Source of the DNA: Mantamonas sphyraenae STR306
Taxonomy: Eukaryota > Protista > CRuMs
Length of the DNA: 64,000 bases
Direction of reading: 5' to 3'
NCBI GenBank assembly: GCA_026936335.1
Contig: JAPMXV010000057.1
Location: 124,001-188,000, forward strand
The translations under genes and the position numbers were made by a program. The notes below the pieces were generated by a model, which saw nothing but the letters and a program-made list of their open reading frames with translations, was not told the DNA's origin and ran no database searches. Shown here piece by piece: positions 11,485 through 14,310 of this stretch. How positions within the stretch are numbered: position 1 is the first letter of the stretch; each line of letters begins with the position of its first letter.

Positions 11485-11678
11485 GATGACGATGGGTTGC
11501 ATGCGCCAGGGGGGGGAAGGGGGGGGGGGGGGGGCGACAAAAGAAGGGATGGAAGCATGGAAATGGTGTGCATGTGCCACCAACAACACAACATCACCAT
11601 TGAGAGCACTCAGAAGATCAACGGCCACACGACACTGTACATCCTCGTCCTCCCCTCTCCCCCTCCATCCACATTCTG

Positions 11679-12359
11679 TCACGCCCATGTAGTCACCTGC
11701 ACCACCCCATCCTTCAACAAGGCATCCTTCACGGTGGCCGGCTTGCAGTGATCATGACACCGCTCGTTCCGCACCCTCGACCACTTTCCGGGCTCATCCT
11801 CCCCACCACAGCAATCGCACACCCCATCATTCACCCTACCACTGGGAATCACAGCACCGTCGCTGCAATAGAAGCTCCCGTCGCAGGCGCTGGTGGCAAT
11901 CTCGTCGCTCCCGTCCGCGCAGTCGCAGTAGTCGTCGTTCACCCTCTCGAAGGAGATGCTCTGCGAGCCGTCCAAACACGCAAACATGCCATCTTTGTCC
12001 TTGTCTGTGTACTCGCTCACCAGATGCGCCGGCACACGAAACTCCAGCTTGCGTTTTGTCGCGCGTGGATGCACTCCTCCCTTGCCTACGCCCTTGTCCT
12101 CCCCTGCCACAGGTTTGCTCCCGTGTTCAATCCCCTGTACAATCTCCCCTGCGCCCACACCCGCACTATGTGGTGCAGCCGACCCTGGTGGCGCTGCCTC
12201 GGGCGCATTGTTCACCGTTTCCACCGCAATCTTCTTTCCCTCTGCGTGCAGCATGTGTGCGTGTGTCTCGTGCGGCTGCATACTCTCCAGCACCAACAGA
12301 TTTGCCAACACCAACGCGAGCAACAGGCCGCCCACCCAAAACACCGTCGACTTGCGCAT
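11679..12359 (-). CDS. Membrane-anchored protein with a glucosidase II beta (PRKCSH-like) Cys-rich domain
   Basis: N-terminal hydrophobic helix, then FACLDGS...VNDDYCDCADGSDE...SAC...FYC...IPSGRVNDGVCDCCGGEDE. Confidence 0.8.
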   Translation of the reverse strand: MRKSTVFWVGGLLLALVLANLLVLESMQPHETHAHMLHAEGKKIAVETVNNAPEAAPPGSAAPHSAGVGAGEIVQGIEHGSKPVAGEDKGVGKGGVHPRATKRKLEFRVPAHLVSEYTDKDKDGMFACLDGSQSISFERVNDDYCDCADGSDEIATSACDGSFYCSDGAVIPSGRVNDGVCDCCGGEDEPGKWSRVRNERCHDHCKPATVKDALLKDGVVQVTTWA

Positions 12360-12494
12360 TCCTCCCCGTCGTCGACAACGACCTTCTCTGCAATGTGTTG
12401 GCGCCCCCTGCGCTACACCCTCGGCAACAGTGATGATGGCAGTGGGACTGCAAACTTTCTGCATTCTCTTTCACCACTCATCTCACCGATCTCA

Positions 12495-14310
12495 TCACTT
12501 GAGAGCGTTGATGTAGCGGCTGATGCTGTGGCACTGCAGCTTCACAATCAGGTTGTACCAATGGCAGCACGGGGCAATGCACGTCTTGCCGCAGTTCAGG
12601 AAGTACTCCTGCTTGACGTGGCGGTAGCCCTGGACCTTGAGCGGGATGCGCGTGACCAGATCGTAGCCATAGCGGCGCGTGGTGACGGCCTTGACGACCT
12701 TCTTGACACCCTTGGCAACCTTCTTGGCGACCTTCTTGGCACCCTTGGCGACCTTCTTGGCGACCTTCTTGACACCCTTGGCGACCTTCTTGAAGAAGCC
12801 ACCGCGACGGCGGCGACGGCGCCAAAAGTCGTTCTCGTCGTCCTCGTCTGCGACCTCCTGGCCAGACTTGGCACCCCACGGGCACACGCCACCCTTGAAC
12901 TCGTTGGTGAAGCGGATCTCCGTGAACAGGTTGTTGAAGCGGCTGGCAAAGGTGCTGTCACCCACGCGCGGCGAGCCAAAGGTGATCACCTTGAAGCCAC
13001 GGCCGTACTTGGTGTAGCGGCTGATGTCCGTAGCCACCAGTGTGGCCACAGCAGCGCCCAGCGAGTGACCAGACACAATCAGTGCCTTGCCACGGCCCTT
13101 GTAGTAGTTCAGGTCGTTGCGCAGGTTGGTGTTCAGGATGGCGTTGGCGCACTCCTGGAAACCGCTGTGTGCGCGGCCGCCCAGTTGGTAGCCGCGGATG
13201 TTGCACGTGCGCAGCTTGAACTTCAGGTTCATGATCCAGTCCTTGGCCTCTGCGGAGCCCTTGAACACGAGGTACACGTTGTTGCCGTTCTCGTAGAGGG
13301 CGCCAAACGTGCTGGTCTTGTGGTGCTTGTAGTACTTGCGCACAGTGTACTTCTGGTTGCGGAAAGTGATGCTGTTGCCCGTCTTGGGCTCATCGTACAC
13401 GTGCTCCGACAGCTTGGCTGCCGTGTAGGCCTCCGAGCGGCTGTAGCCAAAGTCTCCCTCGGCGTCCTTCAGCAGCTCCTCGTTCGCCTGCTGAGCCTCC
13501 ACATCCTCGGCCGTGTCGCGGGCCATGGCGGCCAGGGTCGCCTGGTCCACGTTCCAGCCAGTGAAGCCGTTGACGTCCACGTCCAGCTTGCTCTTCTCCT
13601 CGTCCGTCACAGACTCGGCCTGCTCGGCGTACATCTGCTTGGCCTCGGCAAAGAACTGATCATCGTACTGCGGCTCGTTCGTCATGTCCTCGTCGTCATC
13701 CTCTGTGTGGTGTGTGTGTGTGTGTGTGTGTGTGTTGTTTGTACGACGCGGTCAGCGTGCGTGCGGTTTGTTGGTGGAAAATCGGCCACTTGGGAAAAAA
13801 AACGAGCATGCCAACACGCGCCACTGCGTTTCCACCCCTCCCGCATGCCAATGTCGTCCACGTGCTGCGCATTGTGCATGACCATACGCAGCCCACATGC
13901 TCTCATGTGTTTTGTGTCTCGGCGTACATCCGCTGCAACATAGGCTGCCGCCACGCCCGATTCTGTGGCGTGCTCAGAGAGAAAAAAAAAGGCCCGGTGG
14001 AAACCCTCGCCGCCCGCGCCCCGCACTCACCGTCGAGCAGCTCCTTGATCTCCTCGTCGTCAAGGTCGTCGTTGGACGAATCCTCGTCCTCGTCGTCCTC
14101 ATCGTCAAAGTCGTTCTCGTTGTCCGACGACTCGACAAGGGGCTCCTCGGCCTCCTCCTCCTCATCGCCCTCCGTCTCTTCCACAGCAGAGTTTTCCGAG
14201 TTCTCGGACAGCTCCGCGGCCGTGTCCAGCTCCGTCGAATCGTCGTCGGATGCAATCACAGCCGTGGCCAAAAGGCCGCACAGCAGCATGATCAGAAGGG
14301 ACTTCTGCAT
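12495..14310 (-). CDS. Secreted class-3 lipase with acidic pro-region and internal cationic repeat insert; intron 13703-14030
   Basis: Signal peptide MQKSLLIMLLCGLLATAVIA. Lipase_3 motifs VYLVFKGS, AHSGF, VSGHSLGAAVA, ITFGSPRVGD, DLVTRIP and C-terminal HSISRY. The splice is in phase (GAC G|AG GAT). Confidence 0.88.

Follow-up and report, generated by a model that had tools for sequence, protein, structure and literature searches.

What is a lysine-rich helix resembling an antimicrobial peptide (AMP) doing inside the catalytic domain of a secreted lipase, directly beside the active-site aspartate? The question is raised by a gene of the protist Mantamonas sphyraenae STR306, located on the minus strand of the 64,000 nt stretch of DNA analysed here (GenBank assembly GCA_026936335.1, contig JAPMXV010000057.1, positions 124,001–188,000), which is referred to as the window and whose coordinates are used throughout. 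The gene runs from 14310 to 12495 in two exons and encodes a signal peptide, an acidic pro-region and a class-3 lipase. All searches were run with the exon 2 open reading frame (ORF; 12495–13685, 396 aa), and residue numbers refer to this ORF. The product is best described as a class-3 lipase with a lineage-specific, conserved, AMP-like insertion, and it may belong within a new family of secreted pre-pro modules.

The lipase fold and its insertion

Assignment of the protein to the class-3 (fungal-type) lipase family is solid because the Lipase_3 score, the conserved catalytic triad and GHSLG motif, the AlphaFold2 core and the Foldseek matches point to it together; lipolytic activity is predicted, with triacylglycerol, phospholipid or a feruloyl ester as candidate substrates. 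The Pfam family Lipase_3 (PF01764) matches residues 138–261 (E 1.7e-23; 83.5 bits, where the cut-off is 22), and beyond this the ORF has only a weak match, to Abhydrolase_6. This N-terminal part of the domain (12903..13274, minus strand) contains the lid-like helix AKDWIMNL as well as the GHSLG nucleophile elbow with Ser208 (13056–13070, minus strand). In an alignment of 30 sequences (A1), comprising 26 ordinary Lipase_3 proteins and four insert-bearing ones (the window gene, P0001, L002 and L003, introduced below), G206, H207, S208 and G210 are invariant. The C-terminal part of the domain (12498..12662, minus strand) holds the DLVTRIP motif (residues 342–348), a cysteine cluster and the catalytic histidine. 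Asp342, the catalytic aspartate (12660–12662, minus strand), is invariant in 30/30 sequences of A1, and His386 (12528–12530, minus strand) aligns with the DH/H column of catalytic histidines in A1 and is invariant in all five insert-bearing lipases (alignment A3: the window gene, P0001, P0252, L002 and L003). The AlphaFold2 core is modelled with a predicted local distance difference test score (pLDDT) above 90, as is the N-terminal part, and the C-terminal part with a score of ~90. The top Foldseek matches in the PDB (1UZA, 3NGM, 6QPP, 4TGL and 6XOK; E ~1e-10, probability 1.00) are fungal class-3 lipases and feruloyl esterase A. The original prediction of a secreted class-3 lipase is thus borne out by family and fold.

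Comparison was made with Rhizomucor miehei lipase (4TGL/6QPP), Thermomyces lanuginosus lipase, Gibberella zeae lipase (3NGM) and Aspergillus niger feruloyl esterase A (FaeA, 1UZA). Like these enzymes the window lipase has an alpha/beta-hydrolase core, the GHSLG elbow, a Ser/Asp/His triad, the motif D-x-V-[PT]-x-[IL]-P and a lid-like helix (DW..NL), and like R. miehei lipase, known as a propeptide complex (6QPP), it is secreted with an N-terminal pro-region. Identity to the solved structures is only 16–25%. Unlike the fungal enzymes, the window lipase has a much longer and far more acidic pro-region, four additional cysteines (C268, C369, C373 and C374), and an 80-residue cationic insert where two residues normally precede the catalytic aspartate.

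This insert (residues 262–341; 12663..12902, minus strand) lies between the strand RFTN (258–261) and Asp342. The spacing from the corresponding R-x-x-x-x strand to D-x-V is two residues in 26/26 ordinary Lipase_3 proteins of A1, and the insert is confined to the window gene, P0001, L002 and L003 in that alignment, plus P0252. The earlier claims that an insertion sits beside the catalytic aspartate, and that the counterparts of RFTN and DLVTRIP are normally only a few residues apart, therefore hold; the peptide string that had been given is exact, but its length, put at about 75 residues, is in fact 80.

The insert is built in blocks. It opens with EFKGGVC268PWGAKSGQ, in which Cys268 (12882..12884, minus strand) marks the N-side base and is invariant in 5/5 insert-bearing lipases (A3). 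An acidic patch, EVADEDDEND (277–286; 12828..12857, minus strand), is followed by an aromatic pair and poly-arginine tract, FW-RRRRRR (287–294, with the six arginines at 289–294; 12804..12827, minus strand), a candidate convertase cleavage site. Next comes the cationic amphipathic core of 40 aa (12684..12803, minus strand), made up of GGFF, three 11-mers (KKVAKGVKKVA, KKVAKGAKKVA and KKVAKGVKKVV; 12693–12791) and KAV of the following KAVTT. A dibasic RR (337–338; 12672..12677, minus strand) and YGY close the insert; the RR lies four residues before the catalytic aspartate and is a possible second cleavage site. Its counterparts in the relatives are KKR, KVR, KTR and TK (A3), so that only the last basic residue is conserved. 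The acidic patch, poly-arginine tract and dibasic site are all found, on the minus strand, at the positions originally given.

Tandem Repeats Finder reports a 33 bp unit in 3.1 copies at 12690–12792 (94% matches, score 185). The 40 aa core contains 16 Lys and no Asp or Glu (charge +16), and the whole insert 18 Lys and 8 Arg (net charge +18); repeat finder and composition agree with the 33 bp/11 aa tandem repeat described earlier, with its 16 Lys and no acidic residue. The Eisenberg hydrophobic moment of the core is 0.72 and maximal at 99 degrees, close to 360 x 3/11, while shuffled cores give 0.16 +/- 0.09 and none of 5000 attains 0.72. On an 11/3 wheel (98.2 degrees per residue) each unit has its five Lys side by side, with V, V, V, A and A adjoining one another on the opposite face. 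The proposed strong cationic and amphipathic character with 11-residue periodicity is thus matched by calculation.

Exact 11-residue periodicity, an 11/3 helix and a straight hydrophobic stripe able to rest flat on lipid are features shared with the helices of perilipins, apolipoproteins, alpha-synuclein and CTP:phosphocholine cytidylyltransferase (CCT) domain M. In perilipins, 11-mer repeats are described as targeting proteins to lipid surfaces (PMC10694602, PMC13753571). Unlike the perilipin, apolipoprotein and synuclein helices, the window core has only three repeats and a polar face of pure Lys instead of mixed charge; it is also extracellular or luminal, not cytosolic, and shows no homology to perilipin-type helices (no Pfam match). 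Because the polar face is pure Lys without acidic residues, the window helix would be expected to be selective for anionic surfaces.

Conservation and recurrence of the cassette

By its composition the insert looks like coding sequence and not an intron. The GC content at third codon positions (GC3) is 0.84 in the insert versus 0.88 in the rest of the gene, all 18 insert lysines are encoded by AAG, and there is no GTRAGT donor within the insert. In two very large databases no protein comes nearer to the window lipase than P0001 (471 aa; BLASTP identity 40%), a Trinity transcript from Mantamonas plastica (EukProt EP00003). The P0001 insert reads ...DSDFW-R8-GGFFKKVGKGISKAAKKVAKGVKKVAKGVAKVAKKVVKAV-VGKKR-TGRDLVTRIP, with a helix nearly equal in length to that of the window gene, and the two cassettes are 66% identical, above the whole-protein average. 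As P0001 is an M. plastica transcript, the cassette is present in the mRNA of a sister species. A second M. plastica lipase transcript, P0252, carries the cassette at the same site (FFRRATRW-VKKTANKVGKSVKKVAKKVATGVKKVAKKVGKAIVGKTR-YQTDLIPRLP). A cryptic intron was rejected on the gene-like GC3 and codon choice, the missing GTRAGT donor and the cassette kept in these two transcripts; splicing-out of the segment, which had been named as an outcome that would refute the original prediction, is accordingly unlikely.

An exhaustive HMMER scan of 1.84 billion cluster representatives returned only P0001 below 1e-30, and no further insert-bearing lipase beyond the M. plastica P0106/P0252 pair. Since the scan gave only these, the insert-bearing clade looks lineage-restricted. 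The two Trinity isoforms P0106 and P0252 part immediately behind FFRRATRW, just where the Arg/aromatic junction gives way to the Lys-rich helix. Of the two, the shorter looks like an intron-retention product; if it is one, an intron would lie at the module boundary in that M. plastica gene, a possible trace of exon shuffling.

The genome searched for further copies comprises 25,061,354 bases in 78 contigs (numbered here with the prefix C), and the published FALCON assembly of M. sphyraenae has 25.06 Mb, 78 primary contigs and a GC content of 59.19% (PMC10492846). A search with the lipase found two insert-bearing paralogues, L002 (C32:115k) and L003 (C44:265k), plus several non-lipase loci. L002 carries a cationic cassette at the same pre-Asp site together with more acidic/basic modules N-terminal of the lipase; the locus (L046:1–2697, minus strand, and L002; C32:~113.8–118.8k) is a long open frame in which several modules with paired Cys precede Lipase_3, for example DTDMWF-R5-GSLFKNLTKKIAGGKR...C...C. 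In L003 (L003:1054–2298, minus strand; C44:~264.5–265.8k) the insert at the same site is ~115 aa long, acidic and rich in Ser, and retains no more than a vestigial AWFFRRSSKK; in this copy the cationic helix seems to have diverged or decayed.

A module profile was built from seven copies (alignment A2), in which D12, W14, R16 and R18 are invariant. Searched against the genome, the profile detected independent loci outside the training set at E 2e-7 to 7e-4, and the module is found at at least 10 loci besides the window lipase, including tandem polyproteins. The junction follows the consensus [long D/E/S run]-[D/N]-x-[F/Y/L/M/W]-[W/F]-(G)-R5-11-G-(G)-F-F-[R/K-rich amphipathic helix]. In all copies besides that of the window lipase the poly-arginine tract likewise follows an acidic run, and short signal-peptide first exons lie just upstream of most module genes, an architecture as in the lipase. 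A genome search for the exact string F-W-R-R-R-R gave 42 matches versus 28 in a reversed control, mostly out-of-frame noise, and only C28:33.8k was a true extra copy; the profile search was far more effective. The search proposed earlier, for the Arg-rich and GGFFKK cassette in other secreted proteins, thus finds it at other loci, most with an upstream signal-peptide exon. In a Pfam scan of ten other cassette proteins, no significant family was found except Lipase_3 in L046.

The copies differ in what follows the junction. At C42:217k (DADFWGRRRRRGFFRRIARVGRRIGRF...) the ORF (L043:1099–2664, plus strand; C42:~216.8–218.3k) reads DADFWG-R5-GFFRRIARVGRRIGRF... and runs on into a Cys-rich domain at the C-terminus, in which W..C..GY motifs recur and which has no Pfam match. 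C69:118k (DMDFWRRRSFSRGWRRFRRGVRRVARRV...) encodes a cationic helix of ~120 aa. At C28:33.8k the junction NDFW-R11-GFH... leads into a non-repetitive stretch and not a cationic helix. C52:222.8k has a signal peptide, an acidic run and DLWG-R7-GG, and C22:213.7k a signal peptide, an acidic run and DTWF-R6-GESFVKKVMGKV; further module loci are C54:163.7k (DTDYWGRRVFRRIGRAFRRVGRAV...), C51:563.6k and C75:120.6k. The copies at C32:350k and 353k are near-identical and on opposite strands (L049, C32:~349.7–351.8k, plus; L052, ~352.2–354.3k, minus), ~3.4 kb apart. Each has an acidic region, MFFRR and an Arg-rich amphipathic helix, then a Gly-rich hydrophobic segment (NSPFFKIASMAISFIPGIGTAFG...) common to L043, L053 and L060.

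Two tandem polyproteins, at 293k and 307k (EEELEDFDFG-R7-GFFRRIGGFVRKAVGFV...), lie on the contig of the window itself (L051:1–1659, minus strand, C57:~292.4–294.1k; L053:748–2022, minus strand, C57:~306.7–308.0k). They comprise four Gly/Arg-rich units of ~135 aa with acidic Ser/Asp/Glu spacers between them and a signal-peptide exon upstream, and they match no significant Pfam family. A word-index search with the L053 polyprotein, a method of limited sensitivity, returned no relatives at E <= 0.001. A brief look at C57:191.5–211k, beyond the window, showed secreted ORFs with acidic blocks and no clear DFW-polyArg module.

The arrangement of signal peptide, acidic pro-piece, polybasic site and Gly-initiated, Lys-rich amphipathic helix is like that of cecropin-, magainin- and dermaseptin-type precursors, and the tandem multi-unit precursors elsewhere in this genome are like AMP polyprotein precursors such as Baramicin A. 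Unlike in AMP precursors, the window 'peptide' is embedded within the catalytic domain of an enzyme, and in place of their usual KR or RR the module has 6–11 Arg after an aromatic pair. The likeness to cecropin and magainin drawn in the original prediction therefore stands for the cationic amphipathic helix and the precursor architecture, but does not extend to homology with any described AMP family in Pfam.

Proposed cleavage and docking, and the alternatives

The reading favoured here, tentatively and with somewhat less than even confidence, is that of a zymogen-like lipase which would be cut at the poly-arginine tract and whose helix would then dock the active site on anionic prey membranes. 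In the precursor the charges occur in opposed blocks (pro-region −38, N-terminal part of exon 2 −12, insert +18), so that the molecule may be charge-neutralized and the helix masked. A kexin/furin-type convertase would then cut the Arg run in the secretory or phagosomal pathway. The two chains would remain joined through clade-specific cysteines (C268 with C369, C373 or C374), and the freed GGFF-(KKVAKGVKKVA)3 helix, now the N-terminus of the C-chain, would lie flat on anionic, bacterial-type membranes. As the cationic helix is predicted to be directly continuous with the strand bearing the catalytic aspartate, docking would keep the adjoining active site against the substrate membrane, and lipase and membrane-perturbing helix would act as a single unit attacking prey membranes. 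In alpha/beta hydrolases the acid loop lies on the substrate-binding edge of the sheet. Mantamonads, which are small flagellates, are described as voracious bacterivores (PMC10492846). The original interpretation is supported in part: the secreted lipase, the insertion, its amphipathic character and its recurrence hold, and cleavage, peptide release, masking by the acidic region, docking or lysis, and prey killing stay putative.

The genome supplies a plausible processing enzyme. Kexin/furin-type convertases cut after polybasic sites in the secretory pathway, and two genome loci, L073 and L074, encode a proprotein-convertase P domain. The L073 ORF (L073:94–2391, plus strand; C45:~304.3–306.6k) is 766 aa long and matches Peptidase_S8 (3.9e-44) and P_proprotein (2.1e-28); on these domains it is classed as a kexin/furin-type convertase. 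L073 also ends in a C-terminal SH3 domain, an unusual combination for a proprotein convertase. A six-Arg polybasic site in a secretory protein and a convertase in the same genome are thus both found, as expected of a convertase substrate.

The lipase ORF has eight cysteines in all. Of the clade-specific cluster C365/C369/C373/C374 (12564–12593, minus strand), C369, C373 and C374, past the catalytic aspartate, are invariant in 5/5 insert-bearing lipases (A3), as is C268 on the N side of the insert. Invariant bracketing cysteines are what would be expected if a disulfide holds the two halves together after the loop is cut. A mechanism of this kind has been described for PlaA of Legionella pneumophila. 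There a disulfide loop immediately preceding the catalytic aspartate keeps the triad covered and membrane interaction low; once a protease has cut it, the chains stay disulfide-linked (bioRxiv 10.1101/2023.03.24.534060). Like PlaA and PlaC, the window protein is predicted to be a secreted lipolytic alpha/beta hydrolase with an extra pre-Asp loop, and it has candidate bracketing cysteines and candidate protease sites. Unlike the window lipase, PlaA and PlaC are GDSL-family enzymes of a bacterial pathogen, so the proteins are alike only in topology and proposed mechanism. The loop of PlaA is also short, lacks a cationic amphipathic repeat and is cut by a metalloprotease, not at a polybasic site. 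A further parallel is offered by designed activatable cell-penetrating peptides, which consist of a polyanion, a cleavable linker and poly-arginine and in which the polycation is membrane-active only after cleavage. Unlike in these synthetic peptides, cleavage here may fall within the Arg run itself, and activity would reside in the Lys/Val/Ala helix that follows it.

Several observations weigh against this reading. Cleavage at the poly-arginine tract is suggested by the architecture alone, and the pairing of C268 with C369, C373 or C374 is a prediction from co-conservation. AlphaFold2 models helices in the insert at a pLDDT of only ~50, and their position over the active site is likewise predicted. 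The Arg run is degenerate in L002 (RARKLRK) and P0252 (FFRRATRW), making a cleavage site shared by all insert-bearing lipases less credible, and the acidic insert of L003 means that the cationic helix is not obligatory in this lipase clade. In addition, the Lys-only polar face could equally bind lipopolysaccharide (LPS), polysaccharide or nucleic acid instead of lipid.

The main alternative, and the first of the two options originally offered, is that a free peptide is fully excised; it is considered unlikely here, and less likely than two-chain docking. In such a scheme the convertase would cut both R6|GG and RR|YGY, freeing an AMP of ~42 residues (GGFF...KAVTT) that permeabilizes prey bacteria and leaving a two-chain lipase to act on its own; excision of the C-peptide from proinsulin would be a parallel. 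Basic sites do flank the cassette in both the window gene (R6, RR) and P0001 (R8, KKR), and a convertase is encoded in the genome. The order of signal peptide, acidic piece, polybasic site and a cationic helix beginning with Gly is that of known helical AMP precursors, and the occurrence of the module in tandem polyproteins with acidic spacers is typical of multi-peptide precursors; furin-processed AMP polyproteins are reported, for example Drosophila BaraA (Baramicin A; PMC10041126). However, the C-side site lies four residues before the catalytic aspartate, at the start of a core beta-strand (E338–341), so that a cut there would risk the triad. The sequences at that site (RR, KKR, KVR, KTR and TK) have just one conserved basic residue in common, and cleavage at either site is putative. 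Less likely still is an uncleaved surface loop, in which the insert would be a permanent polycationic arm or extra lid binding LPS, teichoic acids, the cell's own glycocalyx or anionic lipid, the poly-arginine merely contributing to the surface that binds. Such binding by charge would be like that of heparan sulfate by the basic clusters found in lipoprotein lipase and in extracellular superoxide dismutase (EC-SOD). The net charge of +18, the helix length conserved between species and the degenerate poly-arginine of L002 and P0252 would suit such a loop. Unprocessed cationic docking helices are also known: the C-terminus of oleate hydratase is reported as a cationic helical appendage that docks a soluble lipid enzyme on phosphatidylglycerol (PG) membranes without processing (PMC10847778). 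A permanent loop would nevertheless leave unexplained both the sharp acidic-run/D-F-W/Rn/G-FF junction common to unrelated secreted precursors and polyproteins, and the clade-specific cysteines that bracket the insert.

Two further explanations address the charge blocks and the repeat in themselves. It is improbable, though conceivable, that the acidic and poly-basic blocks form a sorting or packaging signal that condenses and routes cargo to an organelle of regulated secretion, for instance an extrusome or dense granule, in which case the module would serve trafficking or condensation and not attack. The module is indeed spread over many unrelated loci, which all have long acidic regions and mostly a signal-peptide exon upstream, and the charge of the lipase precursor is nearly balanced in blocks; yet neither a perfect 11/3 amphipathic helix with a Val/Ala face nor a location inside the catalytic domain by the active-site aspartate would be needed for sorting. 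It is very improbable that the insert is neutral low-complexity DNA, a 33 bp repeat made by slippage that a surface loop happens to tolerate. Recent slippage or conversion is suggested by the 94% identity of the three DNA units, and the loop is modelled as flexible. Against neutrality, the cassette and its length are kept in an orthologue of 40% overall and 66% cassette identity, a pair of paralogues carries the cassette as well, its amphipathic phase has been maintained and the module recurs genome-wide. Random low-complexity expansion was rejected as the principal explanation on the orthologue conservation and the kept amphipathic phase.

Taken beyond the single gene, the zymogen-like, membrane-docking reading leads to a wider and more doubtful proposal: that mantamonads, which belong to the deep-branching eukaryote lineage CRuMs, possess an undescribed modular pre-pro effector system of which this lipase would be a case with the warhead inside the catalytic domain and a two-chain, self-targeting product. 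The system may amount to a portable cassette of acidic mask, aromatic pair, poly-arginine convertase site and cationic membrane-active helix, and this cassette may be deployed alone, in tandem polyproteins, or grafted onto or into enzymes. If so, the logic of animal-style AMP precursors would have its origin or a parallel in protists, and the lipase would be a natural enzyme–AMP chimera; the module suggests that the sequence of signal, acidic pro-piece, polybasic site and cationic helix is used in protists and shuffled between genes. Outside amoebae and ciliates, little has been established about how heterotrophic flagellates kill and digest bacteria, and for a lineage that branches close to the base of Amorphea a lipase with its own anionic-membrane-seeking helix would be a concrete, testable prey-membrane effector. 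The 40-mer and related helices are candidates for new membrane-active peptides, and in the insert nature may offer an example of enzyme targeting to anionic membranes. No description of a lipase with an embedded AMP-like helix cassette was found in the literature searched, nor any report on AMPs in Mantamonas or on these mantamonad modules.

Gene model and neighbouring features

Exon 1 (14031..14310, minus strand) contains the ATG start, the signal peptide MQKSLLIMLLCGLLATAVIA|SDDD and the onset of the acidic pro-region. The signal peptide was called by eye, without a predictor, from an n-region, a 17-residue hydrophobic core and V-x-A at −3/−1. Past the signal peptide, the 73 aa of exon 1 include 18 D, 21 E and 1 K (net −38). 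Exon 2 (12495..13702, minus strand) encodes the remaining acidic helical N-terminal region (charge −12), the insert-bearing lipase domain and, at 12495–12497, the TGA stop. The signal peptide and long Asp/Glu-rich pro-region that had been attributed to the gene are both present, but not in the same ORF as the lipase domain; they lie mostly in the upstream exon (14310..14031).

Splice signals and frame continuity argue for an intron of 328 nt between the exons (13703..14030, minus strand; GTGAGT...CACAG, phase 1), within which the exon frame is interrupted by stop codons. The exon junction is in frame, the junction codon taking one base from exon 1 and two from exon 2. A (TG)16/(CA)16 microsatellite lies inside this intron at 13704–13735, directly before the acceptor.

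Directly downstream of the lipase is a gene with a PRKCSH-like (glucosidase II beta) domain (11679–12464, minus strand; 1.3e-22), which encodes a short protein with a hydrophobic N-terminal segment; the gap between the lipase stop and this ORF is only ~30 nt. A long G-rich run (~25 G, broken by AA) is located at 11507–11535, in an intergenic or 5′ region near the neighbouring genes.

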